From Epithemia pelagica (taxonomy: Eukaryota > Protista > Bacillariophyta), in the NCBI GenBank assembly GCA_946965045.2, contig OX337239.1:1-64000 (forward strand): a stretch of DNA of 64,000 nucleotides, given 5' to 3'. Shown here in pieces: positions 1 through 28,730 of the stretch. A program made the translations under genes and the position numbers. Below the pieces are notes generated by a model. That model did no database searches, was not told the origin of the DNA, and saw only the letters and a list, made by a program, of their open reading frames with translations. Position 1 is the first letter of the stretch, and each line of letters opens with the position of its first letter.

Positions 1-562
1 CCCTAACCCTAACCCTAACCCTAACCCTAACCCTAACCCTAACCCTAACCCTAACCCTAACCCTAACCCTAACCCTAACCCTAACCCTAACCCTAACCCT
101 AACCCTAACCCTAACCCTAACCCTAACCCTAACCCTAACCCTAACCCTAACCCTAACCCTAACCCTAACCCTAACCCTAACCCTAACCCTAACCCTAACC
201 CTAACCCTAACCCTAACCCTAACCCTAACCCTAACCCTAACCCTAACCCTAACCCTAACCCTAACCCTAACCCTAACCCTAACCCTAACCCTAACCCTAA
301 CCCTAACCCTAACCCTAACCCTAACCCTAACCCTAACCCTAACCCTAACCCTAACCCTAACCCTAACCCTAACCCTAACCCTAACCCTAACCCTAACCCT
401 AACCCTAACCCTAACCCTAACCCTAACCCTAACCCTAACCCTAACCCTAACCCTAACCCTAACCCTAACCCTAACCCTAACCCTAACCCTAACCCTAACC
501 CTAACCCTAACCCTAACCCTAACCCTAACCCTAACCCTAACCCTAACCCTAACCCTAACCCT
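1..562 (+). repeat. Telomeric tract (CCCTAA)93 plus CCCT; left chromosome end
   Basis: Perfect CCCTAA repeats from base 1 to 558, then CCCT joining unique sequence. Confidence 0.99.
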
Positions 563-2538
563 TCTATGCATCAAAGGAAGAAGGATGCCAAGAGACTATA
601 TACGAGATATACCACAATGCAAATGGTCAAGGGGAGCTCAACGAGACCTACCATCTGGCCCCACTGTCCATCCCAGACCTTGACTGTGCCTTGAAAATTT
701 TGTATGGCGGGACTGCTCTGTATCGAAGTACCGAGCAACAACAGATGGTTTATACGACAATCAATCAAAAGCATGAAAACTATCATGTCTCCCTTGAATG
801 TGGAGGAGGCAAGAGCCTAGCATGGACTCTACCTGTTTTTGCAAAGACTTATTTTGGGCGCCACTTGGCGGGACTACACATTGTCATCCTACCCTACAAG
901 TTTCTTGCAGCCTTTCATGTGTCCCAGCTACAACAGCTTTTCGATAAGAAGGTTGTTGCCAAGATTGCCTTTCTACAAAATTCAATGGTCAGCCAGAATT
1001 CCTATCCAGATTTTCTTGACGATGTGGGAGGAAATTTTCCAGATGTGATGTTCTGTACGGTGGACTCGATCGGGAGTCTTTTCAAATTTCACCGTCTCTT
1101 TGTGCATGAACTGTCATCAAAACACAAAATTGCCCAATTTTATCTCGATGAAGTGCATACACTACTCAGTGAACAGTTCAGAATGGCATATGACAACATA
1201 CGGAACATCGGGCAATTTGGGGCGCCCCTCACCACACTCTCTGGAACTCTTCCCGGGCCTCTGGTAGAAAGTCTTTATGAATACTTGGGTCTTTGTCGCG
1301 ATCGATTGATTGCGGGGAGAACTCTATTGGGAATCTTCCCTAAGGGTTTCCGAATTGAGACAGTCCAATCATCACAACTAGTCCATGACACAGTGATCTG
1401 CACCAAAGGCAAAGTAACCACAGAGTCATCAACCTGTGTACATGTGAATGTGGCAACTAAACAGCAGTGTACCGACATTGCACAGTGCCTCAAGCAATCA
1501 ACCAACCTTTCTGTTGAAGCTCTGTCATCGGATGAGCCTTCAAGTAGACAAGAAGCAGTTGCCCAGCAGTGGAGATCTGGGGACATCCGAATCTTGGTCT
1601 TAACAACATGTGCACTATGTGGTAATGAGAATCACAATTGTCGACATGTGATTGTATGCGGCATGATATACAGTCTAATGAACATAGTCCAAGCTGTGGG
1701 GCGCCTACGGCCAAGTCAGAGAAAGCCTGATGGGAGTGTCACATTGTTGTATAGCACAGGACACATGGCAAGGGATCTCCAAGAAGACCAGACATTGAGG
1801 CTACTTGAAGACAAAGGATTACTGACTGGATCTGAATCAAGAGCTCACCTTGAGTTGGTGTTTGGCTCAAGTTCAATAGCAAAGTGGCTGGCCAAAAGAT
1901 CATGCCGAGTACAAGGTCTGTCAAGACGATTCGGATTGGAGGTGGATTGCTGTGGTGTGTGTGATTGGTGTGTTGAACAATCAAATCAAAGTGGACACTC
2001 CAGAGTCAGGGAGAGGGTCAGGAATGAAGACATTGATGCGGAAAAGGCTGAATCCTATCTGGCAAGGCTTACAAGAGAATGCATTGTGTGCAAGGAGGCA
2101 GGATGCAATGGTGAAAGCTGTCTGCCCTATGGAGCATGCTTCAACTGTGGTCAGCCAGGTCACCAGAGAGGACAGTGCCGAGTCGATTTCCGAACAGTCT
2201 TGAGCAACAAGGCCTGCTTTTACTGCTTTGATGTGTTCAGCAGGCGCGGCTACAAGCAACACCATCCCAGTGCATGTCCTTTACAACGAAGATTGAAGCG
2301 GCTGATGATCGATGTATATGAGTCAAGGAAGACCAATGGACAATCCAGAGCAATGACTGATTTCATGTCTGAAGTAACATGCGACAGCCATTCGTTTCAT
2401 GCTTTTCTGTGTCAGAGTGTTGAACAACGGATGGGCATGACAGTGACACAGACACCTCATGCAACCACAGCAGCCAGACCATCTGTGGCACGACCAGCTC
2501 TACCAAGGAATCCATATGCAAAGAAAGCATTCAAGTAG
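559..2538 (+). pseudogene. 5'-truncated tyrosine-recombinase/RecQ helicase gene (family A); helicase and C-terminal Zn domains intact
   Basis: The frame of ORF 691-2538 is open back to 559 (PFYASKEEGCQETIYEIYH...). Motifs: ECGGGKS (I), ILPYKFL (Ia), YLDEVH (II), LSGT (III), QAVGRLRP (VI), RQC-like CRV..CGVCDWC and CxxC knuckles. Colinear with the C-terminal half of ORF 16466-20260. Confidence 0.88.
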
Positions 2539-2769
2539 ATAGTATTAAGTTAGTAGTTACAATGTGTCGGGTTAAAGACCATCATCAAAAGGCCCATAGA
2601 AGAGTCATCTCACAAAAAATCTAATCACGTCTCACAAAAAAATATTAGGCCCAAAGAAGGGTCATTTCACACAAAAATCTGACCCAGTCACACTTGTAGT
2701 GACGGGAAATGATACTAGTCGAGCTAGGAATAACTAATAAGCATGGGCATAGGTATGACTAGAATAGGG

Positions 2770-2942
2770 CTGTTCTATTGGGCTGTTCTGCAGTGGGACA
2801 GCAGGCTGTTCTGCAGTGGGACAGGGCACTTCTGCAGTGGGACAGAGGGCGATTCTGCAGTGGGACAAGTGGGATGGGGGCTGTTCTGCAGTGGGACGCT
2901 AGAGTCTACGTAGGCCTACGGACAGGCACTTTCTCCTTAGGG
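2770..2942 (+). mobile_element. Family A element terminus: five TTCTGCAGTGGGAC iterons, overlapping palindromes CTACGTAG/TAGGCCTA, ending CCTTAGGG
   Basis: Identity to the copy at 28559-28730 stops exactly at CCTTAGG; the last 33 nt recur at 22391-22423. Confidence 0.8.
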
Positions 2943-3639
2943 TCTTCTTGCAAAATTTGCTCACATCTAAGGAGGGAAATGGGCCCCGGCGCTTGATTTC
3001 CACCCCCAAAAGCGAATTTCTAGAAAAAATTCGCCGAATTAAAATTTTTTATGCGCAGTTTATTTTTATATGCGCAGTTTTTAACTATAATCCTGCTTTC
3101 CCAACTAAATCTGCAAATCTAGGTCTAACAATGCACATTTCTCTAGCTAGTTCTAGAGATCGAGCTGACTATCACGCGCATGCCACAATTTTAATGCGCA
3201 CAAGCCCGCGATCAAACCACGAATAACGCGCGCCACACTCCGATAATGCGCACTACAACTATCTGGCGCGCTCGACCCCCCCCCGAGACGCGCATGACGC
3301 AACCCTCATGCGCAAGCGTCTGTCCCCTCACCTTTGAATCACGAATTTCCACTCCCACCACATCACACAGCAGCTGCCAGAAAGACTGACGCACATGGAT
3401 GTCCCAAAGAATGTCTCAGATGGATCCTCCTTCCCAATCACCCAAACCGCGGGGATTACCAACTCGACACTCTGATCCATCGAACAAAACCGAACAACTT
3501 AGCATACTAGTCATTCAACAATCAACGACCACCAGAATCGATGCTCATTCATCTCCCTCCACCTCCACCCAACACACCACAACAAACAACAACAGCAGCA
3601 GCAGCAACAACAACAATCGTTCACCCAACGCTATCGAGA

Positions 3640-4560
3640 TTCCCCTGTTCAATCCCATTATCTATCCAGCTTCTTTCATCAACCTAACAGCTCTGCCATT
3701 CCAATCACGCTACAATTAAAGCGGCTTGGGGCATCTGTCTGATTGTTTCTTGGTTCCTTTTCAGCCACCTTTTTGTTGCCTGCTTTCTCTCTGCCGAGAT
3801 TCCCTTTTCAATCCTTTCACCTATCCAACTTCTTTCATCAACCTAACAGCTCTGCCATTCCAATCACGCTACAATTAAAGCGGCTTGGGGCATCTGTCTG
3901 ATTGTTGCTTGGTTCCTTTTCAGCCACCTTTTTGTTGCTTGCTTCCTCTTCAGCCACCTTCACTCCAAAACCGCTGCACCAGAAGAAGAGGAAGAGGAAC
4001 TCAAGCACGGCCAGAGCATTCGAGACATTGACACTTGCACTATCTTGCAGCTCTGCCATTCCAATCACGCTACAATTAAAGCGGCTTGGGGCATCTGTCT
4101 GATTGTTGCTTGCTTCCTTTCAACCACGACCTTCACTCCAAAACCGCTACAACACTTCACTCCAAAACCGCTGCACCAGAAGAAGAGGAAGAGGAACTCA
4201 AGCACGGCCAGAGCATTCGAGACATTGACACTTGCACTATCTTGCAGCTCTGCCATTCCAATCACGCTACAACTAAAGCGGCTTGGGGCATCTGTCTGAT
4301 TGTTGCTTGCTTCCTTTCAACCACGACCTTCACTCCAAAACCGCTACAACAGGAAAACAAGAAGAAGAGGAACCCAAGAAGAAGAACGACCACCAGAGCA
4401 TTCGAAATATTGTCGACATTTGTCCTATCTTTGACACTTGCACTATCTTGCAGCTCTGCCATTCCAATCACCACGCTACAATTAAAGCGGCTTGGGGCAT
4501 CTGTCTGATTGTTGCTTGTTTCACTCAGCTCTGTCCTTCACTCCAATCACGCTATTACAA
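3640..4560. repeat. Degenerate tandem repeat, about 160-210 bp unit, 5 copies plus a partial
   Basis: Core CAGCTCTGCCATTCCAATCACGCTACAA(T/C)TAAAGCGGCTTGGGGCATCTGTCTGATTGTT near 3688, 3848, 4048, 4245 and 4451. Confidence 0.9.
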
Positions 4561-5019
4561 TTGAAGCGGTTTCGGGCTATCTGTTAGATTGTTTATCAAG
4601 AACCCTCCTGTCCTCGTGATACTCGGACTTGAATAGAACAGACCCAAAGCAAGCAGTGTGACACGGTGGTAGCCAGTTGCTTCTGTTCTATTCTTGTCGC
4701 GAGATTGCTTGGACAACCAACCAACCCCTGGTTTTGGAGTAGCAAATTCTGGCACCGATTGTTGGATCACAACGAACAAGACGCTACACATAAAGCGCGT
4801 CGTAGTGTATTCCTTCGATTTGGTTGTTGTTTTGTTACCACTAGAGTTCAGGACCAAACCAAAGACGCTACACAATTCAGCGCACACTTTTTACTGTTTA
4901 GACAAGTACACAAGGTTGTCTCAAAGACGCTACAATTAAAGCGCTTCCTCGACTACCCTTGTTGTTGTTGTTGTTGAAACAAAGACGCTACACAAAAAGC
5001 GCATCGTGACAAGTACAAA

Positions 5020-6114
5020 ATGGCGGGCAACCGCATCAAGGGCCCTCGCTACAAAAAACCACCGACCGCCAAGAATCCTGGTGACCCTTCTTCAATGAAT
5101 GATGAAGTGCGAAACAAAAGAAAGGACGTGTCGACTATGACTGTTTCTGGTACCAATCATACACTTCGAACACACACAAGCGAGGAATCTCACTACACCG
5201 GTATTATGCCCATTACATACGAAAGTGTCCTCAATTGGTATGAAAGTGTTTTTCAAGACAAATCAGGAAAATGGACAACAGTGGAGGTACCACATGACGG
5301 CCATTATGTGAAGATATTCCTACCAATCTGTTATTCGCCTGCATTCCAAGATATCATCTGTCACTCCGTTTTCTGTTTCACAAGAATTAAGAACGAGATG
5401 GATGATGATGACAAGTTGACTCCAATGGTTGCTCGACTGTTGTTCAAAAAGACTCTCTACAGTCCTGTTTCCAATATTTGGAATCAGGCATTTGGGACGA
5501 CAGTGATAGACGGTGCTGAGAATCTGAGACAAACCATTATCAGATTTCTTTCCTCTCATGGCTTAGTCTCTAAGAAGACACGCAAGGGGATCGGTGGGAT
5601 TGGAGAAGCATTGAAACGATACCTTCTAGATGATTCCTCCCTTTACAGGAAACCGCGTCTCGTACCTGTTGGTAAAATCGCATGGGTTATCGAACATATG
5701 GTGGCCATACACCGTTTCATCTCAGAATCGACATCGGACGAGAACATGGACGTGATTTCCAATATCCAAATGGAGAAAGCACTGTTGTATACGATGCCTG
5801 ACACATGGTTCAAGATGTACCTTGAAGAAAGAGATTCTTTGGTACAATATGGAAGAAACGGAGACGATGACGGAATGTTCTACGATCTACTGCATTATAT
5901 AGAAAAACAAGAGGTACTGTCTGCCAGGAAATCGAAAGAAATTGCCGTGCAACGTCGGAGTATAGACTCGCCGGCAAAAAAGAGACAGAAGGTCGTCGCT
6001 GGTAATGATCCTACGGACGAGAAAAAGGATCAAGTACTACCAACTTCCATTACAACGTCGAACCAAGTTGCCCCAAATGGTCTATACGAAAATTTGGAGA
6101 CATTCGAGTTCTAG
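5020..6114 (+). CDS. Hypothetical protein, 364 aa, basic NLS-like motifs
   Basis: Long ATG-initiated ORF with globular composition; PAKKRQK motif; no family recognised. Confidence 0.6.
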   Translation: MAGNRIKGPRYKKPPTAKNPGDPSSMNDEVRNKRKDVSTMTVSGTNHTLRTHTSEESHYTGIMPITYESVLNWYESVFQDKSGKWTTVEVPHDGHYVKIFLPICYSPAFQDIICHSVFCFTRIKNEMDDDDKLTPMVARLLFKKTLYSPVSNIWNQAFGTTVIDGAENLRQTIIRFLSSHGLVSKKTRKGIGGIGEALKRYLLDDSSLYRKPRLVPVGKIAWVIEHMVAIHRFISESTSDENMDVISNIQMEKALLYTMPDTWFKMYLEERDSLVQYGRNGDDDGMFYDLLHYIEKQEVLSARKSKEIAVQRRSIDSPAKKRQKVVAGNDPTDEKKDQVLPTSITTSNQVAPNGLYENLETFEF

Positions 6115-6421
6115 AAGCATGTCATTGTTCCATGTCCATGGAATTTTGCAAAGCCACACCGATAGGTCAGCCCAGCGAGTGAAACGCGACCATGTTGGGA
6201 ATGATTACACTTATCCTCACAGTATGTGGTAATACTCACAGTGAATAGTATAGTGTGACGATTTCTGTACACAAAGGCGACCGATCGGTTATCCGTGGAT
6301 CTATTTCCAGTTGAACTCTCGTTCATATGACAGCAGAGGTTTCATAAAAATCCAAAGAAGAAGCAACAAGTACAGGTATTTGCATTCACAGCAAAACGAA
6401 GAGAAGGAGACTGCAAACAGA

Positions 6422-7378
6422 ATGGCTGACAATCCAGAGGACCAACCGGAGGATGAATCGGGAGATGAATCGGAGGAAGAAGAATCGGAGGAAGAAGATT
6501 TTTATGTTCGGGAACGTAGACGACGACGAGAAATGCGGGCGATCAACGACAGGAACTTGGAAGTGAATGATCGGCCTTGTTTCAGGGACGCTGGGAGGAT
6601 CTTTTTTGATTACGATAATGAAGAAGAAGATGTACCACAAGTCATAGAACAACTCAGAGAAGAGATGCGTGTCGGTCATGAAATCCAGACTGAATTCAAA
6701 CGGTTGGTGGACGAAATGCTTAGAGGTGAGAAACTCTGTCCATACTGTGTTATCCTTGGTCGTCCCACACCACATCACCAGTGCAATCATGGAAATACTA
6801 CAGTGGTAACACGTGCGGCATATCTCGATTATTCAGTTATCTGGCAGCAGAATTTTTTGATGCGTTGTAACTTATGTCACCGCCACAGGCATCCAACATT
6901 TCATTGTCAGGTGTGTAGGGAATGTTTCCGAATTCCCGAACGCTCAATACCTTTTGGGATTCCACAACCAGATTTGGATTCATGCAGTGTCTGTGTGGAA
7001 TCTGAGAACAAGCACTTCGTGTGGCAGTTCTGTATGCTCATACGCCATATTGTGGCGCGTACTTTTCAAATAACATCATTTTACGATGGTGTGAACTTTC
7101 CCCGTCAAATCACCTGGCCAATGTTTACTATTGTCCGCAGCTTTTGGCTTGAGGAATTGCGATCCCGTTTCTATTTTGATGATAACGATTGTGCCCCATA
7201 CGATTATGCCCGAGCATCTGATAAAACATGGGCAGTATGGTTGCTTTCGTTGCCTCATTCTACGGCTGGTTTTCGCAACTACATGCCACTCTTTGTCAGG
7301 TGCTTCCGTAATTGTCTCGAAAGAATGGCTGAGACGGCGGAGTTGGAACGTGGAAATATGGATGGTAATGATCATTGA
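6422..7378 (+). CDS. Hypothetical Cys/His-rich (putative Zn-binding) protein with acidic N-terminus; paralog of 7440-8567
   Basis: ATG at 6422 inside ORF 6311-7378; CPYC, CxxC pairs, NKHFVWQFC and WAVWLLS...NYMPLFVRCF. Confidence 0.7.
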   Translation: MADNPEDQPEDESGDESEEEESEEEDFYVRERRRRREMRAINDRNLEVNDRPCFRDAGRIFFDYDNEEEDVPQVIEQLREEMRVGHEIQTEFKRLVDEMLRGEKLCPYCVILGRPTPHHQCNHGNTTVVTRAAYLDYSVIWQQNFLMRCNLCHRHRHPTFHCQVCRECFRIPERSIPFGIPQPDLDSCSVCVESENKHFVWQFCMLIRHIVARTFQITSFYDGVNFPRQITWPMFTIVRSFWLEELRSRFYFDDNDCAPYDYARASDKTWAVWLLSLPHSTAGFRNYMPLFVRCFRNCLERMAETAELERGNMDGNDH

Positions 7379-7439
7379 CATATATTATAAATCTTGTTAT
7401 CTGTTCCCAGTTTGCCTTTCGATGAAGTCGAGAGTTTGT

Positions 7440-8567
7440 TTAATACAATGGTTTCGATGAAGACATCAAGGCTGTGTAACAATGACGGAAGAACGGCATG
7501 TAATTGTAGTATCGACCGAAAGACATGGAGACAAGCCATTTAGACCAGGAGTCTTGGTCAAGAACATGACAAAATGGAGATGTGTACTGAGAAGACTCCA
7601 TCGGATCTCGCAGTTCGTTGTACATCAACTCTGTTGCGTTTTTGATAATATCCTGTGCATGTTTGGGAATCGTGCCTGGTCCTTTGCAATTGGGCTTCAA
7701 TTGTGAGTACACCAACGCCCGTCCAGCAATATGACAGAATCGCCAGACGAAGTACTTGTTGCAAGAGTTCCAACAACCATGCGAGAAGACGCATTCTGAA
7801 TAAGAATTGCATGGCCTTAAGCAAAACTTACACACCAATGGAACCTTGTTTATGTCTGATTCTTCGCGTGTGATATTCATCGAATCATGGAAATACAGGG
7901 CTTCGGTGCAACAACGTTCATTCCCACCTGAATCACATCCGTTCATGGGCACTCCACAACCATAACAACAATCGGCACATGAGAGAGATTTACCGAAGCG
8001 ATGCCAACATTTTCCTGTAAGTCTACGATCTGTTGAAAGGTTGTCGGTTACAAAACACCAAGGACAGACTGGCTCTGGGGGAACATCATTGGATCCATAG
8101 ATTTTATTGACAAGCTCAGTGAACCGAATAACTTCGAGATGCAGCTTATCTCGGTTTGCTCTTGGTTTACACATTGGAGGAGAGTCATGTAATAGCAAGA
8201 TTGGAATAGTAGATGGATCGGCAACCTTGAGCTTCTTCTTATATGGGTTTGGGATCAACTGATACGATGGGCGCTTGATTGGTGGAAGTTTCTTCTCCTC
8301 TTCTTCCTTGGTATCAAGCTTAGAAGACGGAAGTGGATGACATTTGATTATTGATTTGGACGCAGGCGGTGGCTTCTTGTCATGTTCACCGTCGCAAGTT
8401 TTCAGGGTTGGAGAGTGCGTTTTGACCATGGGGGTCTCTATTTCCTCTAGCTCGTATGGGTTGATCATCATTTCTTCATTAGATGGAGGTATCTTTGTGA
8501 CTGGAAAGTTTGGTTTGACCACCAAGGGTGGAACTGTTTTCTTCCTCGATTTGTATGGGTTGATCAT
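7440..8567 (-). CDS. Hypothetical Cys-rich protein with three NPY motifs; paralog of 6422-7378
   Basis: CPWC, CxxC pairs, NKYFVWRFC and WSKWLVS...NYMPFFRHCY match the neighbouring convergent gene. Confidence 0.7.
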   Translation of the reverse strand: MINPYKSRKKTVPPLVVKPNFPVTKIPPSNEEMMINPYELEEIETPMVKTHSPTLKTCDGEHDKKPPPASKSIIKCHPLPSSKLDTKEEEEKKLPPIKRPSYQLIPNPYKKKLKVADPSTIPILLLHDSPPMCKPRANRDKLHLEVIRFTELVNKIYGSNDVPPEPVCPWCFVTDNLSTDRRLTGKCWHRFGKSLSCADCCYGCGVPMNGCDSGGNERCCTEALYFHDSMNITREESDINKVPLVCKFCLRPCNSYSECVFSHGCWNSCNKYFVWRFCHIAGRALVYSQLKPNCKGPGTIPKHAQDIIKNATELMYNELRDPMESSQYTSPFCHVLDQDSWSKWLVSMSFGRYYNYMPFFRHCYTALMSSSKPLY

Positions 8568-8762
8568 TGTTTGAAGAGGAGTAGAATAGCCTTACTGACT
8601 GAAGACTGAGGATGACTTTTGGAAAACGATGGAAAGTATCTACTATTTCATCCAATTTGTGTGTGACACTCTGAGTTGAATTGGTCGGCTCGCGTACGGT
8701 TGGGGGGGAGATTAGGAGGGGAGTGCTGGTATGTGACAACCCCCCATAGAGGCAAATTATGA

Positions 8763-15620: not shown

Positions 15621-15666
15621 TGCGCGTGTCCTGCGCGCGGATGATTCTAGTAGGATGCGCTTAGGG

Positions 15667-15978: not shown

Positions 15979-16100
15979 TGCTGGTTTCCTCGTGTGCATG
16001 GAACAGAGGAAGAGACATAACCAGCCGACTCTCAAGCAAAAGCAAGGATGGGCCTCTTTGCAAGAGTCATAATTCATGAAACAACAATGACCTTTTGTTG

Positions 16101-19400: not shown

Positions 19401-20260
19401 AGAAGTCTTTTGGGGTACGCAGTGAAGGTGAAAGTAGAAATCGCATTGGGAGTTCTTGCTCCATCAAAGACCAACAGCCTTGATCGGTAATTTGCTGGAA
19501 CCATCTGGACATGGAGGGCAGCCTGTGCTGTGAGCCAGTTTTCTCCTTGATGGTACAACAAATCAAAGAGTGGTTGATTGTCGATGATGTGTTTCAAGTT
19601 GATGGAGTCATATAAGAAATGCACTCGTTCCTTGAATGACCTTCCCTTGGGCCTGGATGGGTAAGGTTCGTCTTGGGCCAAGGGATGGAAAAGGGGTACG
19701 AAACACCCCATCATATCGGGGAGTACATGAAGAGTTGCTTGTAGTTGTGTGCTTGTTTTGAGTGAAGGGGCTTCTTGACAGGAATACTTGATCTGTAATG
19801 CCTTGAGGGAAATCATACGGCCACAGGTACTGATTTGTAGTTCCTCTTCTGTAGGGGAGGGAGCACCGCAGGTACGACCCGAGGACAAATGTCTGTACAC
19901 ATTTTGAAGTTTCAAGCTCCCAACAAGACAATGACATGAATAGCCCTTGACCTTTTCCCCCGTCATATATTCAGAGACACTTGAAATGTCTTGCATAACA
20001 CTTTGAGGGAGGGTCATTTGATGTTCTATCAGTGACTGGCTTTCAGAACGTGAGACAGACACACCATGGCCATTAAGGTGCCTTTGCATGGACCATAGAC
20101 TGGTTCCGAACGGTTTCCCACATAGGCGACACCCCATACCAAAGGGGGTCACTAGCGTGACATCGACAGCCTGTAGTTTGTTCTCTTCCTTTTTTTTCTT
20201 CGTTGGTCTCCTCCTTGATGGAGAAGGAGTCCCTGGCCCATTATTAGAGGGGGAAGCCAT
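16466..20260 (-). CDS. Zn finger-tyrosine recombinase-RecQ helicase-Zn knuckle fusion protein (family C), 1264 aa, C-terminus clipped by a junction
   Basis: CRLC..H..H finger; YR-like MRYTEI, QIRHLW and SGHSYWTHRDHY; helicase PCGGGKS, VPYKFL, VDEIH, LSGS and QALGRLRP; RQC CRV..CNVCDVC; CxxC knuckles. The stop codon is the TAA of the junction CCCTAA. Confidence 0.88.
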   Translation of the reverse strand: MASPSNNGPGTPSPSRRRPTKKKKEENKLQAVDVTLVTPFGMGCRLCGKPFGTSLWSMQRHLNGHGVSVSRSESQSLIEHQMTLPQSVMQDISSVSEYMTGEKVKGYSCHCLVGSLKLQNVYRHLSSGRTCGAPSPTEEELQISTCGRMISLKALQIKYSCQEAPSLKTSTQLQATLHVLPDMMGCFVPLFHPLAQDEPYPSRPKGRSFKERVHFLYDSINLKHIIDNQPLFDLLYHQGENWLTAQAALHVQMVPANYRSRLLVFDGARTPNAISTFTFTAYPKRLLPEFKKLLSFLCQSNHKLLPLTRDIPSLLAKLCLETVDSVQHHTTVMTYCAGRVVRGQEGSETLSVWSPSYIATMLSAILAMLRASICSMIYFMGRGYHEKASRLVENVQNSITVNFLASTIRRMRERESLTPSSRKVSIQDNYDILVDGFMFKFQKWSNVIPIIFDKLVASLCKVIKGNRWVNLLNRRYPLFVCWSSMGKTTMTLASGHNNYSQEDIVLQDDYDLCDIDVLASYLELAFHGTGLGSMRYTEISRSLFSDVRWHGGCVYYYSHSEKAFSVHHKGKNLIEHKLCMTLSRAYMVFRVLCELCHESLGCLVPVRNNRAFYMGDAVATIFGFEDRPDCTQIRHLWTSVSNVLFPQVDETAIHNQHTTQMVAEQSGHSYWTHRDHYGSLSGNTKEELFMIYHKALGEKLVQKETVIAKGLSDEQILLTLHKLFGPAANYTCDQQRDMLHYTCSEYERHGHFGLPCGGGKSMSWILPTTGVRLYGTKQQTTLVIVPYKFLAGYHDESMISTAKQTKVDVRSVTLTASDFSLGELPDVISDMKNLPDVVFMSLDAIWVLERNHSFILKEWVTAGKLGRIIVDEIHTIYSEIGFRTRLECLPRLAKYEVPIMTLSGSLPRRFLPPLMKYLALSKGTLDDMTISHSDRVLGSFPSGFRFSVVVDVAIRYKFKDFIQSTMNSFARLGHGIHVIVASKQLGMDVVASLEEMSLGPVEFVTSETTTSKQRDIAKRWSASAISILVSSTVALVGNENPKCHCVVVVGHLFSLMSVVQALGRLRPKQRTGTSSFVIFANKLSSTRQAAMEKEDMMNFHRLRELGVIDTSNEQDYMQIGTIKGLVDWDTERGKCRVVSLAGKFGSTYEQCNVCDVCIGRQKMIPVKVVGSQAKQKEEICTTQVNDAMLVLMTLKERCLVCGRRECQGDACLTKGCFNCGGDHFRRDCWFSDFLTNHYKGRICYKCLDYHERPGYQSHSLSNCP

Positions 20261-20724
20261 TGTCGATAGAGGTTTTGCTGAGAGTGTTCAAGAGACATCT
20301 TTCATCGTTCATCAAAGAAAGGGAGTGATGACCCTTTGCAGAATTGCATTGGGCCCAATTTACTGAACGAATGATGGGTAGGTACAAAGACCTAGAGGCA
20401 TAAACTAGGAATGGTCAAAATGGGATTTTGATGAGACCTAGTGATGGGTGGAATGAGATTTTTCTGTGAAATGCAAGCGTCATTTGGCGGGAAAAAAGAT
20501 TGTACAAAAAAGTTAGTTGGTCATTTGTGTACAAATATATGTCACTCATACACACATATTAGCTGGTTTGTTGTAACAAGGAAATTTTGTACAGCAAACC
20601 AGAGGAAATTCAATCTTACGTTGATTCTTCTATGTAGAGTAGGGCAAGACAAAAACCTAACTGGCAGAGCTCTGAAAAGTATTTGGCCAGTATAGAGCAT
20701 ATTGAATATGACGGCTTTTCGGGA

Positions 20725-20911
20725 GTGGTCAAAGGGGCATAGACAAGGCCACTGCTCAATCGCAACAAAAGCATAACAAATTGCAGCTCATCCGCAACAA
20801 ATCCTTGCTCATATGCAACAGGCACTATAGGATTTTGTGCTCATATGCACACGTTCAAATTCTACGGTCTCTAGTACTAAAAGCTCCCAAAAAAGTGAAA
20901 TATCCTTAGGG
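20725..20911 (+). mobile_element. Family C terminus, copy 1 (four GCTCA-N2-YGCA iterons, CTACGG-N36-CCTTAGGG), upstream of the YR-RecQ gene
   Basis: Duplicated at 27385-27564; identity ends at CCTTAGGG. Confidence 0.82.
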
Positions 20912-21261
20912 TACAATGTTGTGAGACGGCGAGCTCGACATTTGTATTGTCCACTGAACCTGTTGATCTCCTTGTCTGGTTTGGCGAGTTCTTGGTTATC
21001 CGCCATAGTGCAATTTCCACAAAAGAAAAAACCACCACGGAAACGAGCAACTTGGCCTTGTCCGAAAACAGAACAAGGCTTGAATTCTTGATCTTTGAAG
21101 TTGTAACAAATCCGGGCAATTCTTTCGCCCTCGTTAAAGGCCTGTTCCACTGATACCCCTTTCTTCAGACGAGCGGCTCGTGTTTGTTGGTTGGGTGAGG
21201 GTGGGAGCAGCTGAATCTGCCAATCAGAACGACGAACAGGAGCAACATTCTTCGTAGCCAT
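20905..21261 (-). pseudogene. Truncated hypothetical Cys-containing ORF (segment D)
   Basis: ORF MATKNVAP... reads ...TTLYP into the junction CCTAAG and runs on into family C terminal sequence. Confidence 0.5.
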
Positions 21262-21869
21262 TGTAAACTACAGAGAAGGGACTTGCCAACGGGTCGGTCT
21301 GTATACAAAGATTGCTTCAGCAAGGGGATTATGTGTTATGTGGTGAGATGGAGGAGCAATCCATGATACATCGTCAATTTCGACAAGTTGGGGTCATCGG
21401 ATGCTCCTTTTGGAAGAGAGGCCCAAACGAGGTTTCCCAATTGAAATTAGTGAATGAACAACGATTGACCTGCGACTCGTGGGAAATGCTGTATTCAAGT
21501 ATGTTTAGAAATAAATGTTGGGTGGGGTGGGCGATCGAGTAGGCCGACTGACTGTGGAGGTTCGTCCTCATATTTTGCTGCGAGCGTGAAGGCCAGTTTT
21601 GGGAGCGAAAATGAGCATCGTTGGAGGTGCGCTGGTGCTGATGTAACTATACAGTGCAGTAGAATTGTTATTACTCTAACAGATTGGATAGTTACATCAG
21701 AGTGACAGGTTGAGCATTGCTGTCGATAAGGCATCCTAAGTTGGATCGGATGGTTTTGGTGAAAAATTGGATGCTCGGGTTCTTATATTTAATAAAAAAG
21801 ACTTCCAAAGGCTAGGCTCGCGCGTGGGTTGGGAGTCCAACAGCTCGTAATGATACCTAGCTGTACCTA

Positions 21870-21967
21870 TGGGAGCTCATATGCAAAATATGCAGCTCAA
21901 GTGCAACCTGTAGAAAGCTACGGGCTCTGGTACAAAAACTAGAATCTAGACCTAAATTTCCTTAGGG
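21870..21967 (+). mobile_element. Family D terminus (two GCTCA iterons, CTACGG-N36-CCTTAGGG)
   Basis: Same architecture and spacing as B and C despite different intervening sequence. Confidence 0.72.
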
Positions 21968-22395
21968 TCATTGTTACTAATGACTCTTTGCAGAATTGCA
22001 TTGGGTCTGATTAACACACCAACGAATGGTCATTTTTTGTTGGGCCTATTGAGATTTTCAGGTGAATGACCTTTACTTCCGAATGATTTTTGGCGCGAAG
22101 GGCCACGCCGGCGAGCTTTTCCCGCCAGACGAATGGGAAACAACTAAGAGTGCGGTAATGGCTAGTAGTCAAAGAAAACAAGGAGCCATACTCAATATGA
22201 GTGCTAGGAACTAAATCTAGGGGGGGCATAGGCAAGCTATCTGCTCATCCGCAACAATACTTAACAAAATGGCTGCTCATCCGCAACAAAATGCTCATAT
22301 GCAACAATCCACTGTGGAAATGGTTGCTCATATGCAACAGTAGATTTCTACGGGTCCTGGTACAAGTCAGTAAAAAAAAGTGCATTATCCTTAGG
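21968..22395 (+). mobile_element. Family E terminal fragment (B-related; four iterons, CTACGG-N35-CCTTAGG)
   Basis: Shares TTTGGCGCGAAGGG...AACAACTAAGAGTGCGGTAATGG with B; has its own terminal sequence. Confidence 0.72.
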
Positions 22396-22423
22396 CCTAC
22401 GGACAGACACTTTCTCCTTAGGG
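22391..22423 (+). mobile_element. Minimal 33-bp family A terminal remnant between an E terminus and a B fragment
   Basis: TAGGCCTACGGACAGACACTTTCTCCTTAGGG has one mismatch to 2911-2942. Confidence 0.8.
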
Positions 22424-22761
22424 CCAATTGAGGTTTTCAGTTGAAGATGTTTGGCGCGAAGGGGCACGCAGGCAAGCTTTTCGCGCCAAAAGAACGGGGG
22501 AACAACTAAGAGTGCGGTAATGGTTGGTAATGAATGAAATTCATGACTCATATTGAATATGAGTGCTTAGAAATTAGACTTGAGCGGGGCATAGACATTC
22601 TGTGCTCATCTGCACAACGGGCAGTGCTCTTTTGCAACAAAAGGCATATATATCAGTGCTCATATGCACAGATACTATAGCCCCTAGTGCTCATATGCAC
22701 ACGTTCAAATCCTACGGTGTCTAGTACTAAAGACACCCAAAAAAGGCAAATATCCTTAGGG
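22421..22761 (+). mobile_element. Family B terminus, copy 2
   Basis: Near-identical to the B copy ending at 16471. Confidence 0.85.
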
Positions 22762-23274
22762 TAACCTGCTGCAGGGCAGCGGCATGGTAAATATTGAATT
22801 CTCAACTTGAATTATTGGGGTCCAGTTGGTTTCTTGCTGCATGGTTTCTCTTTGGGGCCTTGGCATGAAGCATCCACAATTCAGCTTGAAGAAAGTCTTG
22901 GCAATGACTTTGTCACTAGCGCAACAACCAGCAACGTGCTTCTCGCACAAAAGCTTCACATGAAACATCTTGTCACAGTCACTACAGAAATACTTGATTC
23001 TTGTATCATTTGACTCATGAATGAAACAATCAAACGGTTGGTTGTTGGCATTCTCCACAAGAGTGTGTATTTTGTTACCAAGATGTCTCCCAGGAAAGCG
23101 AAAGGACACCCCATGAATTTTGGAGCAGGTCTTGGCGTGGCGGGCAAGACACTTCATGTTTGCTCGGAAACCACCACCACAGAGCTTACAGACCAAGCCA
23201 CAGGGTGTGGCAAAGTCCACAAGCCCCAAGTAATCGTCAAACTCCATGGTGGCTGTTGTCGTTCCTATGGTCAA
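22756..23274 (-). pseudogene. Divergent N-terminal fragment of a YR-RecQ family gene (family F)
   Basis: FATPCGLVCKLCG..ARH, YFCSDC..CEKHVAGC and KLNCGCFM align with VTPFGMGCRLCG..QRH, YSCHC..RHLSSGRTC and ISTCGRMI. The stop is the junction CCCTAA. Confidence 0.7.
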
Positions 23275-23324
23275 AATAGGTTTGGGATGTATGACCCTTT
23301 GCAGCCAAAAAAGAGGCCCTAAAG

Positions 23325-23884
23325 AGGGTCATTCACCTCAAAAACTGAAAAGGCCCTAACACCAGAGATCATTCACCTCAAAATCTTTGAGCGACAAGAA
23401 GGAATATGGTTTACTATGGAGAGTTAATGTAGGTTTGCAAATCGACCTTCTTGTGGTCGAAATCGACCTTTTTGTGGTCGCACTAAAATTTCGCACGCAA
23501 CAATACAGTGATTCAAAATTGACCTTTTTGTGGTCGCGCATGTGATTCTACAGAATGAACTTAGTGCGCACGACAAAAAGGTCGATTTCTAGCAAAACCC
23601 TTAGGGTCATTCACCTCAAAAACTGAAAAGGCCCTAACACCAGAGATCATTCACCTCAAAATCTTTGAGCGACAAGAAGGAATATGGTTTACTATGGAGA
23701 GTTAATGTAGGTTTGCAAATCGACCTTCTTGTGGTCGAAATCGACCTTTTTGTGGTCGCACTAAAATTTCGCACGCAACAATACAGTGATTCAAAATTGA
23801 CCTTTTTGTGGTCGCGCATGTGATTCTACAGAATGAACTTAGTGCGCACGACAAAAAGGTCGATTTCTAGCAAAACCCTTAGGG
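23325..23884 (+). mobile_element. Family F terminus, tandemly duplicated (278-bp period), GACCTT(T/C)TTGTGGTCG iterons, each copy ending AAAACCCTTAGGG
   Basis: 23325-23606 and 23603-23884 are essentially identical; a third copy ends at 25851. Confidence 0.85.
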
Positions 23885-24700
23885 TCTTGGTCGATAGGGA
23901 TGGAGGAGTGAGGGATATGGGTGTACCAACTTGATGTCTCGGTCCTTCCAGTCAAGAATCAGTAGCAAATACAACAATCCAATAGGGTCTTGGTCGATAG
24001 AGATGGAAGAGGGAAGTATGGGGGCGCACCAACTTGGTGTCTCGGCCCTTCAACAGAACCACCAATCAAGATACAGCAATCCAATGGGGTCTTCTTGGTC
24101 GATGTAGATGAAGGAGGGATGGAGAGGGGTGCACCAACTTGGTATCTCAGCCCTTGTCCCAATCGGGAAGGAGTAGCAACACAGCAATCCAACAGGGTCT
24201 TGGTCGATAGAAATGGAGGGGTGAAGGAAATGGGTGCACCAACTTGGTGTCTTGGCCCTTGTTCCAATCGAGAAGGAGTAGCAACACAGCAATCCAACAG
24301 GGTCTTGGTTGATGGAAATGGAGGGGTGAAGGAAATGGGTGCACCAACTTGGTGTCTCGGCCCTTGTTCCAATTGAGAAGGGGTAGCAACACAGCAATCC
24401 AACAGGGTCTTGGTCGATGGAGATGGAGGGGTGAAGGAAGAGGGTGCACCAACTTGGTGTCTTTTGCCCTTTGTTCAATAGAATCCTCACCAATCCGACC
24501 GTTCAGATCGTTGAAAATGGTCTTCTGGGATAATAGGAGGGAAGAAGCAGCGGCAATCCAGCAATCCAACCAGTTTTGGTTGATGGAAATTGATGGGAGA
24601 ATGAAATGGGTGCACCAACTTGGTGTCTTCGCCCTTTTTCAAACAGAACCACCAATCCAGTCGTTCAGAGCGTTGAAAATTGTCTTGTGGGATGATAGGA
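23881..24700. repeat. About 105-bp tandem repeat, 6 copies plus degenerate ones (segment H)
   Basis: GGGTCTTGGT(C/T)GAT near 23881, 23984, 24086 (variant), 24194, 24299 and 24404, with GGTGCACCAACTTGGTGTC in most units. Confidence 0.9.
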
Positions 24701-24879
24701 GGGAAGAAATAGTTGCCAAACAGCGATCACATGGTTGGTTTTCATGGAAACAGAAGAAAATGATTAGTGGGCATATAGGAAAACGACAAAACGAACTCTC
24801 ACTGTTGTCTTGTCGACTTGGCTTACCTAGCACCTTTCCAATTTGAAAAAGGAAATGATTCTCTTTGTGTTTGCCTGTT

Positions 24880-24945
24880 TGTTGTAGCTGTTGTTGTTGT
24901 TGTTGCTGTTGTGTTGTTGTTGTTGTTGTTGTTGCTGCTGCTGTG
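24880..24945. repeat. (TTG)n/(CTG)n microsatellite
   Basis: Read directly. Confidence 0.9.
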
Positions 24946-25471
24946 TGTTTTTTGGGGCGTTGGGGGTTGGTGTGAGTTGGATGAGGCACTCTATGACTCT
25001 ATCGTCAAAAAGTGATCACAAAAGTGGGAGAGTATATCTTTTGTGTGGTTGTTGTGTGAGGAAAATCTAATTTTCAGCGTTCTTCTGTGATTTTGTGTCC
25101 ATTGTTCTTCGTATGTCACTGTGACGTGATTTGGTGGTGGAGGAGAAATTTGTGGGTCGCTTTTGGAGTTTACGTGCGACTGGAATACTAGGTGTTATAT
25201 GTGTAGCTAGTAGTTAGGTATCTAGGCAAAGGTTAGGCTCTGTGCACGCGTTTCCACATACAATAAACATGCTCACGCGGGTGTCAACACGTTTCACGCG
25301 TTGTCTACACGTTTCACGCGCATTCACGCGCAATCTGGAGCGCCACGCGCTTCGTACGCGCCAAATGCGCGTGATCCGTGTTCTGCGGGTGCTGCACGCG
25401 CCTATTGGGCGTGTGTCACGCGCCTGTTGGTGGAATTCCAGTCACTTATCTTCAAAAAACCTCCTTAGACG

Positions 25472-25851
25472 CAAGTAATCGTCAAACTCCATGGTGGCTG
25501 TTGTCGTTCCTATGGTCAAAATAGGTTTGGGACGTATGACCCTTTGCAGCCAAAAAAGAGGCCCTAAAGAGGGTCATTCACCTCAAAAACTGAAAAGGCC
25601 CTAACACCAGAGATCATTCACCTCAAAATCTTTGAGCGACAAGAAGGAATATGGTTTACTATGGAGAGTTAATGTAGGTTTGCAAATCGACCTTCTTGTG
25701 GTCGAAATCGACCTTTTTGTGGTCGCACTAAAATTTCGCACGCAACAATACAGTGATTCAAAATTGACCTTTTTGTGGTCGCGCATGTGATTCTACAGAA
25801 TGAACTTAGTGCGCACGACAAAAAGGTCGATTTCTAGCAAAACCCTTAGGG
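25472..25851 (+). mobile_element. Family F terminal fragment, copy 3
   Basis: Matches 23227-23606 including the start of the family F ORF; ends AAAACCCTTAGGG. Confidence 0.85.
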
Positions 25852-26913
25852 ACTCCAAACAGAAAGTGTCTCTGAACCCTCTTGCCCCCGGACAACTCTC
25901 CCCGCGCAGTAGGTCATGACTGTGGTATGATGCTGAACAGAATCCACTGTTTCTAAACACAGCTTTGCCAGTAAAGAGGGAATATCTCTAGTTAGTGGCA
26001 GAAGTTTGTGGTTGCTTTGACACAGGAACGAGAGCAATTTCTTGAACTCGGGGAGAAGTCTTTTGGGGTACGCAGTGAAGGTGAAAGTAGAAATCGCATT
26101 GGGACTTCTTGCTCCATCAAAGACCAACAGCCTTGATCGGTAATTTGCTGGAACCATCTGGACATGGAGGGCAGCCTGTGCTGTGAGCCAGTTTTCTCCT
26201 TGATGGTACAACAAATCAAAGAGTGGTTGATTGTCGATGATGTGTTTTAAGCTGATGGAGTCATATAAGAAATGCACTCGTTCCTTGAATGACCTTCCCT
26301 TGGGCCTGGATGGGTAAGATTCGTCTTGGGCCAAGGGATGGAAAAGGGGTACGAAACAACCCATCATATCGGGGAGTACATGAAGAGTTGCTTGTAGTTG
26401 TGTGCTTGTTTTGAGTGAAGGGGCTTCTTGACAGGAATACTTGATCTGTAATGCCTTGAGGGAAATCATACGGCCACAGGTACTGATTTGTAGTTCCTCT
26501 TCTGTAGGGGGGGGAGCACCGCAGGTACGACCCGAGGACAAATGTCTGTACACATTTTGAAGTTTCAAGCTCCCAACAAGACAATGACATGAATAGCCCT
26601 TGACCTTTTCCCCCGTCATATATTCAGAGACACTTGAAATGTCTTGCATAACACCTTGAAGGAGGGTCATTTGATGTTTTATCAGTGTCTGGCTTTCAGA
26701 ACGTGAGACAGACACACCATGGCCATTAAGGTGCCTTTGCATGGACCATAGACTGGTTCCGAACGGTTTCCCACATAGGCGACATCCCATACCAAAGGGG
26801 GTCACTAGCGTGACATCGACAGCCTGTAGTTTGTCCTCTTCCTTTTTTTTCTTTGTTGGTCTCCTCCTTGATGGAGAAGGAGTCCCTGGCCCATTATTAG
26901 AGGGGGAAGCCAT
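25846..26913 (-). pseudogene. Second copy of the family C YR-RecQ gene, truncated after 355 aa
   Basis: Near-identical to 19197-20260; ends SVWSP-stop at the junction CCCTAA. Confidence 0.92.
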
Positions 26914-27384
26914 TGTCGATAGAGGTTTTGCTGAGAGTGTTCAAGAGACATCTTTCATCGTTCATCAAAGAAAGGGAGTGATGACCCTTTGCAGAATTGC
27001 ATTGGGCCCAATTTACTGGACGAATGATGGGTAGGTACAAAGACCTAGAGGCATAAACTAGGAATGGTCAAAATGGGATTTTGATGAGAACTAGTGATGG
27101 GTGAAATGAGATTTTTCTGTGAAATGCCAGCGTCATTTGGCGGGAAAAAAGATTGTACAAAAAATTTAGTTGGTCATTTGTGTACAAATATAGGTCACTT
27201 GTACACACATATTAGCTGGTTTGTTGTAACAAGGAAATTTTGTACAGCAAACCAAAGGAAATTCAATCTTACGTTGATTCTTCTATGTAGAGTAGGGCAA
27301 GACAAAAACCTAACTGGCAGAGCTCTGAAAAGTATTTGGCCAGTATAGAGCATATTGAATATGACTGCTTTTGGGGAGTGGTCA

Positions 27385-27747
27385 AAGGGGCATAGACAAG
27401 GCCACTGCTCAATCGCAACAAAAGCATAACAAATTGCAGCTCATCCGCAACAAATCCTTGCTCATATGCAACAGGCACTATAGGATTTTGTGCTCATATG
27501 CACACGTTCAAATTCTACGGTCTCTAGTACTAAAAGCTCCCAAAAAAGTGAAATATCCTTAGGGCATAGGTAAATTCCTGGCTCAATCGCAACGGGGGTT
27601 ATGAAAAATTGCAGCTCATCTGCAAAATGAGCATAACAAATTTGCTCATATGCAACAAAGCACTGTAGGATATTCTGCTCATATGCACACGTTCAAATCC
27701 TACGGTCTCTAGTACTAAAACATGCCAAAAAAGGGGAAAATACTTAG
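27385..27747 (+). mobile_element. Family C terminus copy 2 (to 27564), followed directly by a related C' terminus (27562-27747, ending ACTTAG)
   Basis: Two consecutive iteron-CTACGG-N36-(C/A)CTTAG modules. Confidence 0.8.
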
Positions 27748-28730
27748 TGTGATTGGTGTGTTGAACAATCAAATCAAAGTGGACACTCCAGAGTCAGGGA
27801 GAGGGTCAGGAATGAAGACATTGATGCGGAAAAGGCTGAATCCTATCTGGCAAGGCTTACAAGAGAATGCATTGTGTGCAAGGAGGCAGGATGCAATGGT
27901 GAAAGCTGTCTGCCCTTTGGAGCATGCTTCAACTGTGGTCAGCCAGGTCACCAGAGAGGACAGTGCTGAGTCAATTTCCAAACAGTCTTGAGCAACAAGG
28001 CCTGCTTTTACTGCTTTGATGTGTTCAGCGGGCGCGGCTACAAGCAACACCATCCCAGTGCATGTCCTTTACAACGAAGATTGAAGCGGCTGATGATCGA
28101 TGTATATGAGTCAAGGAAGACCAATGGACAATCCAGAGCAATGACTGATTTCATGTCCGAAGTAACATGCGACAGCCATTCGTTTCATGCTTTTCTGTGT
28201 CAGAGTGTTGAACAACGGATGGGCATGACAGTGACACAGACACCTCATGCAACCACAGCAGCCAGACCATCTGTGGCACGACCAGCTCTACCAAGGAATC
28301 CATATGCAAAGAAAGCATTCAATTAGATAGTATTAAGTTAGTAGTTACAATGTGTCGGGTTAAAGACCATCATCAAAAGGCCCATAGAAGAGTCATCTCA
28401 CTAAAAAATCTAATCACGTCTCACAAAAAAATATTAGGCCCAAAGAAGGGTCATTTCACACAAAAATCTGAACCAGTCACACTTGTAGTGACGGGAAATG
28501 AAACTAGTCGAGCTAGGACTAACTAATAAGCATGGGCATAGGTATGACTAGAATAGGGCTGTTCTAGTGGGCTGTTCTGCAGTGGGACAGCAGGCTGTTC
28601 TGCAGTGGGACAGGGCACTTCTGCAGTGGGACAGAGGGCGATTCTGCAGTGGGACAAGTGGGATGGGGGCTGTTCTGCAGTGGGACGCTAGAGTCTACGT
28701 AGGCCTACGGACAGGCACTTTCTCCTTAGG
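27747..28730 (+). mobile_element. Family A copy 2: 3' fragment of the helicase gene (premature stop 27967-27969) plus the A terminus
   Basis: Near-identical to about 1958-2941; ends CCTTAGG; innermost junction of the stack. Confidence 0.9.

Follow-up and report, generated by a model that had tools for sequence, protein, structure and literature searches.

Polar stacks of one-ended recombinase-helicase elements at chromosome ends of the pennate diatom Epithemia pelagica

Results

A polar stack at the left end of a chromosome

We analyzed a 64,000-nucleotide (nt) stretch of the diatom Epithemia pelagica (GenBank assembly GCA_946965045.2, contig OX337239.1, positions 1–64,000; hereafter the window), whose left part holds a stack of mobile-element units that encode a tyrosine recombinase fused to a RecQ-like helicase. 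Positions 1–558 read (CCCTAA)93, and the window is the left end of a chromosome. The + strand carried the motif CCTTAGGG ten times between 2935 and 27557, each copy at the site named in the original prediction, and the − strand carried it once, at 1338 within an open reading frame (ORF). Dinucleotide shuffles gave an expectation of 0.89 copies, and none of 100 shuffles reached 11. Because the motif bears TTAGGG on the + strand and the telomere reads CCCTAA at the left, every motif is inverted relative to the telomere.

Comparison of the 70-nt left flanks sorted them into about eight terminus families, labeled A1–A3, B, C, D, D' and E, and the right flanks matched interior positions of longer copies. 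Each motif thus separates a recurrent terminus from a break in the middle of another element, as the original prediction had stated. The Pro-stop endings of three − strand ORFs (ends at 16466, 22756 and 25846) were likewise confirmed as products of the junctions, the CCC-TAA coming from the motif itself, and the distal parts of interrupted elements were absent from the window and from the six related loci that were searched. Five near-matches had also been proposed as junctions. Three of them were true junctions (22389, CCTTAGGC; 27743, CTTAGTGT; 28724, CCTTAGGT); the other two, 15659 and 25463, belonged to two-ended terminal inverted repeat (TIR) transposons, and the window therefore contained 13 one-ended units (Table 1) instead of the roughly 15 claimed. 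The constant part of the motif was C-TTAGGG and not longer, because family A3 ends in ATA-CTTAGGG. We concluded that a polar, one-ended stack with a fixed joining motif was supported.

Unit 1 contained a recombinase-helicase ORF (691–2538, +) whose N-terminal side is cut by the telomere, followed by about five subterminal repeats of type TTCTGCAGTGGGAC, a 12-nt palindrome and the terminus. The ORF of unit 3 (16466–20260, −) encodes 1264 amino acids (aa) and loses its C-terminus to a junction, where it ends in Pro-stop; that of unit 11 (25846–26913, −) is also cut by a junction. Unit 11 was 98.5% identical to 19195–20911, unit 13 was 98.8% identical to 1959–2941, and unit 9 was found again at another locus (L014). 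A host gene begins at 29619, 0.9 kb from the innermost junction.

The 1264-aa ORF and its relatives led to six further loci (L001, L002, L008, L009, L010, L014), all at the extreme ends of 0.24–2.2 Mb contigs in one ENA assembly (ERZ21939226). The architecture recurred, facing in the same direction as predicted, at all seven chromosome or contig ends (the window plus six loci). With every contig turned so that its end is at the left, 49 CTTAGGG versus 5 reversed were counted in the window and the first five loci together, and L014, which also reaches a true telomere, held 7 versus 4. Copies that were 98–99.9% identical occupied different ends. The stacks are piled head-to-tail copies of a recombinase-helicase mobile element at the chromosome ends of a pennate diatom.

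Table 1. Features of the stack at the left end of the window, from the telomere inward.
Feature	Position	Strand	Remarks
Terminal telomere array, (TTAGGG)93 on − strand	1–558	−	Abuts truncated family C element
Unit 1, family C	559–2942	+	Terminus ends CCTTAGGG at 2935–2942
Unit 2, family A1, first 21 nt	2943–2963	+	Intact copy has GAGGG just before break
Nested two-ended TIR transposon, 12,762 bp	2964–15725	.	Outside the one-ended family
Unit 2, family A1, remainder	15726–16471	+	Terminus ends CCTTAGGG at 16464–16471
Unit 3, family A2	16472–20911	−	Terminus ends 20904–20911, upstream of gene
Unit 4, family D, 1056 nt	20912–21967	+	
Unit 5, family D', 429 nt	21968–22396	+	Junction reads CCTTAGGC
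Unit 6, final 27 nt of a family C terminus only	22397–22423	+	
Unit 7, family A1, 338 nt	22424–22761	+	Intact copy: TTGGG before break
Unit 8, family B, 845 nt	22762–23606	+	Intact copy: TTGGG before break
Unit 9, family B, 278 nt	23607–23884	+	Intact copy: GAGGG before break
Unit 10	23885–25851	+	Last 380 nt of family B (25472–25851) after TIR-type remnant (23885–25471)
Unit 11, family A2, 1713 nt	25852–27564	−	Intact copy: GAGGG before break
Unit 12, family A3, 185 nt	27565–27749	+	Junction CTTAG then TGT; target GTGT
Unit 13, family C, 982 nt	27750–28731	+	Innermost junction CCTTAGGT, onto unique subtelomeric DNA

The encoded protein

The 1264-aa ORF encodes C2H2 fingers, a Cre-like tyrosine recombinase, a RecQ-like helicase and CCHC knuckles. 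The proposal that a tyrosine recombinase and a RecQ-like helicase are fused in one protein held up, with the fold, the active-site residues and the helicase profile in agreement. Pfam matched only DEAD and Helicase_C in this protein (at 754–1064), and a CCHC knuckle in the family C copy. The N-terminus with its C2H2 fingers was found by a PDB sequence profile search, and the recombinase was recognizable only by alignment and fold.

An exhaustive search with residues 1–740 returned 223 representative relatives. Many of those listed were 1300–1600 aa long and had the same N-terminal region followed by a helicase. All 29 relative clusters that were looked up came from environmental or unannotated assemblies, on 3–14 kb contigs outside this genome. 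In an alignment of 28 relatives, the catalytic residues R535, K562, R634 and H668 were invariant and E538 and Y677 nearly so; the His of HxxR was not conserved. The catalytic motifs resemble boxes I and II of tyrosine recombinases, and H668 and Y677 are 9 apart, the spacing of Cre and XerD. Four in-genome families that are 22–52% identical also retained R, E, K, R, H and Y. Because the active site is kept in these divergent families and near-identical copies lie at different ends, the sequences suggest that the system is functional and recently active.

An AlphaFold2 (AF2) model of P0001:1–740 (predicted local distance difference test score, pLDDT, 81) was compared with PDB structures using Foldseek. 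The top 23 matches were all Cre (probability 0.87–1.00, 430–480 aligned columns). XerH, XerA and topoisomerase IB came next; E-values were 5e-3 or weaker, because the query is multi-domain. The helicase profile (A4) gave its best PDB matches to RECQL5, BLM, RECQ1 and E. coli RecQ (1e-19 to 1e-12, positions 4–434), and the match extended through the RecQ-type zinc subdomain. RecQ members ranked ahead of DEAD-box and RIG-I-like helicases, with the exception of eIF4A (2.6e-12). No RQC or HRDC domain was matched in Pfam and NCBIfam searches.

Eight environmental contigs that carry relatives (L003–L007, L011–L013) offered no more than hints of similar ends: CCTAAGGG lay 380 nt upstream of the ORF in L004 and CCCTAAGG at 124 in L012, and subterminal repeats were present. 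Four of the environmental contigs (L003, L004, L012, L013) had a second ORF of 213–356 aa directly after the recombinase-helicase gene. Tandem or direct repeats flanked these relatives; in L004, 97–288 matches 5867–6057, and L012 had 239-nt repeats upstream and approximately 180-nt repeats downstream. One environmental relative (P0047, 1607 aa) showed a weak C-terminal match to a Tet-like 2-oxoglutarate-Fe(II) oxygenase domain at residues 1431–1587 (E 2.6e-4, which does not reach the Pfam cut-off). Scans of viral and JGI contigs with single proteins gave no match.

Junctions, targets and chromosome tips

An uninterrupted copy of the target was available for 18 distinct junctions, and 18/18 read GGG in register with the GGG of the motif. 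GGG starts at 1.4% of stack positions (chance of 18/18, ~1e-33). The base before GGG was A in 8 targets and T in 10, and never G or C (hereafter the WGGG rule, W being A or T; chance of W at −4 in 18/18, 2e-4). A at this position, which would extend pairing with the motif, was no commoner than among all WGGG, and neither TAGGG nor any longer match to TTAGGG was enriched among the targets. Because A was not favored over T and longer matches were not enriched, the choice of site looks like protein recognition and not base pairing; the target sequences fit selection by an enzyme.

Targets varied, whereas the donor end was exact in 40/43 distinct junctions over the seven ends. The three variants were CCTTAGGC (unit 5, CTTAGG then C, so read because the target was TAGGC within a C terminus), CTTAG then TGT (target GTGT), and CCTTAGGT, for which no intact target copy was found. 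All three fit a joint placed slightly within the motif. There was no duplication at the joints. Five right flanks were each joined to two different donor families, as would follow if existing junctions, which are perfect TTAGGG sites, were preferred as targets.

At the tip of the window the G strand read ...GAAGGG and then TTAGGG repeats, within the helicase ORF of a family C element; at the tip of L014 it read ...GATTA and then GGGTTAGGG, 375 nt from a B terminus. At both real tips, then, telomere repeats were joined inside truncated elements at 3-nt matches and in two different registers, which in sequence terms is the signature of de novo telomerase addition. The original prediction held that each element carries the telomere as its other end. 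This part did not stand: both tips were healed at arbitrary truncation points within elements, in two registers, and the elements therefore bring no defined telomere-bearing end. Such efficient healing at 3-nt matches also makes a route that needs long-lived uncapped ends less attractive.

These results bear on the possibility that the joints were made by repair. An uncapped end would be resected, its 3' ...CCC would anneal to the terminal GGG of an element, and microhomology-mediated end joining (MMEJ) or break-induced replication would join the two; the recombinase would at most make the precise donor end. Every junction did have 3–5 nt common to both sides, and the shifted joint in the three variants looks like the use of microhomology. 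However, a mismatching T at −4 was as common as the matching A and G/C never occurred there, longer matches were not enriched, and the donor end was almost never trimmed. Tips do become truncated within elements, as repair would have it, but telomerase healed both tips seen at 3-nt matches and would compete for such ends. The lack of reciprocal products is in line with repair, as is the link between subtelomeric RecQ helicases of fungi and yeast and recombination-based end maintenance (PMC4522978); an exact ...C-TTAGGG-3' end would still need a maker. We judged repair to be unlikely, though the leading rival.

One-endedness, unit sizes and duplicated blocks

The seven ends presented 43 distinct right flanks, and each segment in every stack had its own terminus on the right side. 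No second element end was found at any of the seven ends, nor was the outer remainder of an interrupted element found further distal. About half of the units were shorter than 1 kb, the gene alone needing ~4 kb, and the shortest measured 27, 47, 76 and 93 nt. For units of these lengths, circular cassette intermediates are therefore excluded.

Unit sizes thus speak to a second alternative, in which Crypton- or integron-like circles would be excised and reinserted whole at a terminus or at WGGG sites, their outer parts being lost later. For Cryptons, the proposed insertion is by recombination of a short motif at the terminus with a target that is nearly identical to it (PMC9977147), and one unit can have differing neighbors, for example the 1009-nt A1 unit at L002rc 2744 and 4282. 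Against such circles, all four of the shortest units are too short to circularize, every segment has its own terminus with no 'outer half' distal to an insert, and a left end with flanking WGGG was not found at the seven ends. We consider this route very improbable.

Blocks of several units were also duplicated. L002rc contained a 5.4-kb block with six junctions in tandem (1–5650 and 5397–11045, 99.9% identity), and L014rc had a two-unit block of 371 nt, likewise in tandem (554–1017); unequal exchange therefore reshapes the stacks too. At ~830 in L010rc, a motif-less joint ran from A1 interior to A2 interior (…CCAATG then ACAGCC…), as a tandem duplicate with a 941-nt period. Large identical blocks and multi-unit tandem copies, such as the L002rc pair and B278-C93, present twice in L014, are what ordinary subtelomeric duplication and shuffling or repeat misassembly would leave, with the motif shared by descent. 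Descent, however, would have to account for 43 distinct right flanks combined with about eight unrelated terminus families that share the same 7-mer, for the WGGG rule on the target side, and for the same pattern on seven separate contigs; its probability is close to negligible.

Termini and gene orientation

Each family had its own set of 3–6 subterminal tandem repeats of 18–23 nt (families A and D, TGCTCATATGCA; family C, the type given for unit 1; family E, a 23-mer), which presumably are binding sites for the zinc fingers of the element. A short palindrome lay 30–45 nt from the end, often with CTACGTAG or similar, and A/T-rich sequence led from it into C-TTAGGG. The terminus was upstream of the gene, which runs telomere-ward, in families A, B and D', and downstream of the gene in family C. 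Because the terminus can lie on either side of the gene and the repeats are family-specific, it is a DNA site and not an RNA 3' end. No hammerhead or other Rfam RNA was found at the termini, a scan of 1–32000 giving only sub-threshold noise resembling small nucleolar RNAs.

Orientation matters for a further alternative, terminal retrotransposition, in which an RNA ending ...CUUAGGG-3' would be copied by a reverse transcriptase primed from the chromosome 3' end, as in HeT-A/TART, Zepp and Athena/Terminons. Such a process predicts centromere-facing 3' ends with outer truncation, and the anatomy of the stacks is the same; there were many short units consisting of the inner end only (about half below 1 kb), and some termini contained A-rich stretches. 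But no reverse transcriptase was found in any stack ORF and no ribozyme at the termini, gene and template RNA would be of opposite sense in families A, B and D' and of the same sense in C, and the G-strand unit at the end cannot pair with a G-rich overhang. The family-specific subterminal repeats and palindromes, moreover, resemble DNA-binding sites. Retrotransposition is in our judgment highly improbable.

Nested TIR transposons and other features of the window

The segment 2943–16463 is not a one-ended element. It is an A1 unit that an ordinary TIR transposon has split, leaving a target-site duplication. Alignment end-points, which fell off any motif, located a complete transposon of 12,762 bp at 2964–15725, with 15-nt TIRs that match at 14/15 positions and tips that begin CATCTAAGGAGGGAA. 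It is flanked by CA on both sides, and the intact A1 copy has a single CA (2-bp duplication). Beyond it the A1 unit resumes at 15726, so that the interrupted unit totals 767 nt (2943–2963 plus 15726–16471), and an uninterrupted 764-nt counterpart lies at L010rc 1578–2341. Nested two-ended insertions thus do occur in the stack, but as transposons of a different kind from the one-ended elements.

The several ORFs of this transposon had no Pfam match and no known relatives. A 1285-aa ORF (8763–12620), proposed as a Penelope-like reverse transcriptase with a GIY-YIG domain, was rejected as such: its only homologue match was itself, and it is part of the transposon. Its cluster has 53 members, and the transposon is therefore multi-copy. 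The 'family F terminus' at 15659 was also rejected, as it lies within the transposon near its 20-nt subterminal repeats (15541–15640), and the 'family G' terminus at 25463 was the right tip of a second TIR-type element. In this remnant (23885–25471) the tip CCTCCTTAGACG, at 25460–25471 and adjoining CA, is the same kind of end as that of the 12.8-kb transposon; 105-nt tandem repeats occupy ~23880–24640, and the left side was cut off by a later one-ended junction.

The TIR tips (2964–2972, 15717–15725 and 25460–25471) contain CCTTAG (…CCTTAGATG, …CCTTAGACG), a hexamer that is also in the …CCTTAGGG termini; this may be coincidence, shared host-factor binding or telomere mimicry. L001rc 12604–13397 held 660 nt copied from the left end of the 12.8-kb transposon, in inverted orientation, and then 136 nt, joined to a B element exactly after GGGGG. 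The left partner ended …TTCTAACAG and not CTTAGGG, and this joint may represent another terminus type or a different kind of joint.

The host gene (29619–32132, −) was 89% identical to a Fragilaria crotonensis protein and 80–86% identical to those of other diatoms, which marks the host as a pennate diatom. It is flavin amine-oxidase/phytoene-dehydrogenase-like, its best named match is annotated as all-trans-retinol 13,14-reductase, and its two ORFs, ~57 nt apart, are probably separated by a short intron. Further inward, a tandem segmental duplication of ~3.9 kb (48043–51877 and 51873–55940, 85–94% identical) contained ORFs of 450–470 aa without a Pfam match and a RING-finger ORF. A Copia-type retrotransposon lay at 57501–63631 (−), with RVT_2 in a 1499-aa ORF and 165-nt identical direct repeats (57197–57361 and 63664–63828) that resemble long terminal repeats.

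Discussion

We propose that the recombinase joins the single end of the element to a subtelomeric WGGG and replaces the distal tip non-reciprocally, telomerase then capping the new end; we hold this proposal to be evenly poised between right and wrong. The element protein, with its zinc fingers, Cre-like recombinase, RecQ-like helicase and CCHC knuckles, would cleave just 3' of C-TTAGGG and also on the 3' side of a same-strand subtelomeric WGGG, usually inside an older copy, and the element end would be joined to the centromere-side DNA. Because only ~3 nt are shared, probably one strand pair would be exchanged, and helicase and replication would finish the joint. The RecQ-like helicase and the single-strand-binding knuckles are plausible helpers in this strand-exchange step. 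All DNA distal to the target would be replaced without recovery of the reciprocal product, and the undefined outer end of the newcomer would be capped by telomerase wherever breakage occurs. Repeated cycles would leave a polar pile of inner stubs.

The anatomy of the stacks, the target rule, the protein domains with an intact active site, and telomere addition at truncations are what the sequence analysis shows. Any polymerase- or ligase-type model needs a donor whose + strand ends exactly in ...C-TTAGGG-3'. A tyrosine recombinase fits the polarity of the joints, as it would hold the 3' phosphate and join it to the 5'-OH of the strand cut after WGGG.

Several points, in addition to the microhomology described above, weigh against this proposal. 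Joints share only ~3 nt of sequence, whereas classical tyrosine recombinases require two cleavages and 6–8 bp of identical overlap. No reciprocal joint (an interior ending in WGGG, then sequence that elsewhere follows a junction) was found in the examined ends, one candidate being rejected as a paralogue, and a single reciprocal crossover is a hypothetical route. A free or 'terminus-out' donor form was not seen at the seven ends. L001rc 3417–8601 and window 15726–20911 were 99.2% identical over a block that includes internal junctions, and ordinary homologous recombination between subtelomeres explains such junction-containing blocks, common to several ends, equally well. Pfam, NCBIfam and PDB sequence searches with the N-terminal 740 aa matched zinc fingers only and no recombinase family; the active site is intact, and catalysis is predicted from sequence and structural model. 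TIGR00614 (recQ_fam) scored 27–35 bits for two relatives versus a cut-off of 219.8 and gave no match for P0001; because these scores are so far below the cut-off, we call the helicase RecQ-like. All of the evidence comes from one genome and from contig ends.

The Crypton DNA transposons, reportedly introduced as tyrosine-recombinase elements by Goodwin et al. in 2003, offer the closest comparison. According to the model in PMC9977147, Cryptons have, like the elements here, a tyrosine recombinase without reverse transcriptase, no TIRs, and a terminal motif that resembles the target. In CryptonF-1_cRei, active in Chlamydomonas, terminal CACCG faces target CAYCG (PMC9977147); the corresponding likeness here is C-TTAGGG to WGGG. 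However, Cryptons are two-ended and inserted whole at dispersed sites, whereas the present elements are one-ended, located at tips and in one orientation, and every locus that we examined lay at a contig end. The fusion of a RecQ-like helicase, C2H2 fingers and CCHC knuckles to the recombinase also sets them apart. In Academ transposons, RecQ helicases are encoded by accessory genes (PMC3627910) and are not part of a tyrosine-recombinase fusion. By protein type and motif-target logic Cryptons would be the nearest known kin, with a two-ended, dispersed anatomy that the stacks do not share.

Y' and TLH elements spread by homologous recombination, and Y' copies are separated by telomere repeats in normal orientation. 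To our knowledge, no recombinase domain has been reported in Y', TLH or UTASa. Yeast Y', fungal TLH and Ustilago UTASa place a multi-copy RecQ-type helicase gene beside many telomeres, as seen here (PMC4522978; bioRxiv 10.1101/2024.02.27.582403). The stacks differ from Y'/TLH in the single inverted unit at each joint, the site-specific terminus and the WGGG target rule. Among the 29 relative clusters that were looked up, which come from a library of 1.84 billion representatives, none had a TLH name or an NCBI/UniRef source.

Telomeric retroelements (HeT-A/TART/TAHRE of Drosophila, Zepp of Chlorella, Athena/Terminons of rotifers, Coprina of fungi, MoTeR of Magnaporthe) form the same polar arrays, with the defined end toward the centromere and truncation on the outer side. 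They depend on a reverse transcriptase and on the 3' end of an RNA, which consists of poly(A) or C-rich repeats and often bears a hammerhead ribozyme; in the present elements we found neither reverse transcriptase nor ribozyme, gene orientation varies by family, and the terminal unit is a G-strand repeat.

In way of working, though not in membership, the proposed joining resembles XerC/CTX phage integration and integron attC x attI recombination. Those reactions use ~3 nt of identity on one side of the core and exchange one strand pair, replication resolves the joint, and the result is both non-reciprocal and irreversible. Integrons, too, build polar arrays, in which every unit finishes with a recombination site. 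These systems are bacterial, act on folded single strands or circles, and insert whole units in place of replacing tips. Vaccinia topoisomerase IB carries out sequence-specific strand transfer. Borrelia ResT is a telomere resolvase that also performs telomere exchange on linear replicons (PMC5388405). Both enzymes work at replicon ends through tyrosine-recombinase or topoisomerase IB chemistry; their specificity lies in a short sequence on the 5' side of the cut, they can join foreign 5'-OH ends, and ResT also unwinds DNA; they serve bacterial or viral hairpin telomeres without telomerase, however, and we saw no hairpin ends here.

No description of one-ended, tip-located recombinase-helicase elements was found in the literature searched, a coverage that mostly leaves out subscription journals and Repbase. 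We place the elements among the tyrosine-recombinase DNA elements, with a substantial chance that they merit a separate class. More tentatively, and somewhat on the doubtful side of even, we suggest that they may represent a class of mobile DNA new to eukaryotes, one-ended and tip-replacing: the fused recombinase-RecQ protein would attach the single site-specific end, which closes with one telomere repeat unit, to WGGG sites near chromosome ends, and the second end would be supplied by the host telomerase. A bolder version would have the elements also existing as linear episomes with a telomere at each end. The 223 relatives on environmental contigs of 4–10 kb suggest that many marine protists may harbor such elements.

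Two kinds of colonist are known at chromosome ends: retroelements, and helicase genes propagated by homologous recombination. If the proposal is true, these elements would add a third route, one that is one-ended and site-specific and works at the level of DNA, and they would actively reshape subtelomeres and pass from one chromosome tip to another. This would supply a concrete enzyme for fast subtelomere turnover, link Cryptons with the long-puzzling telomere-linked helicases, and give a eukaryotic counterpart of the single-strand exchange of CTX phage and integrons. Both the protein and its terminus of ~100 nt are of a size suited to direct tests in vitro and in a transformable diatom, and a system that works as proposed could be used to replace chromosome tips in a targeted way.

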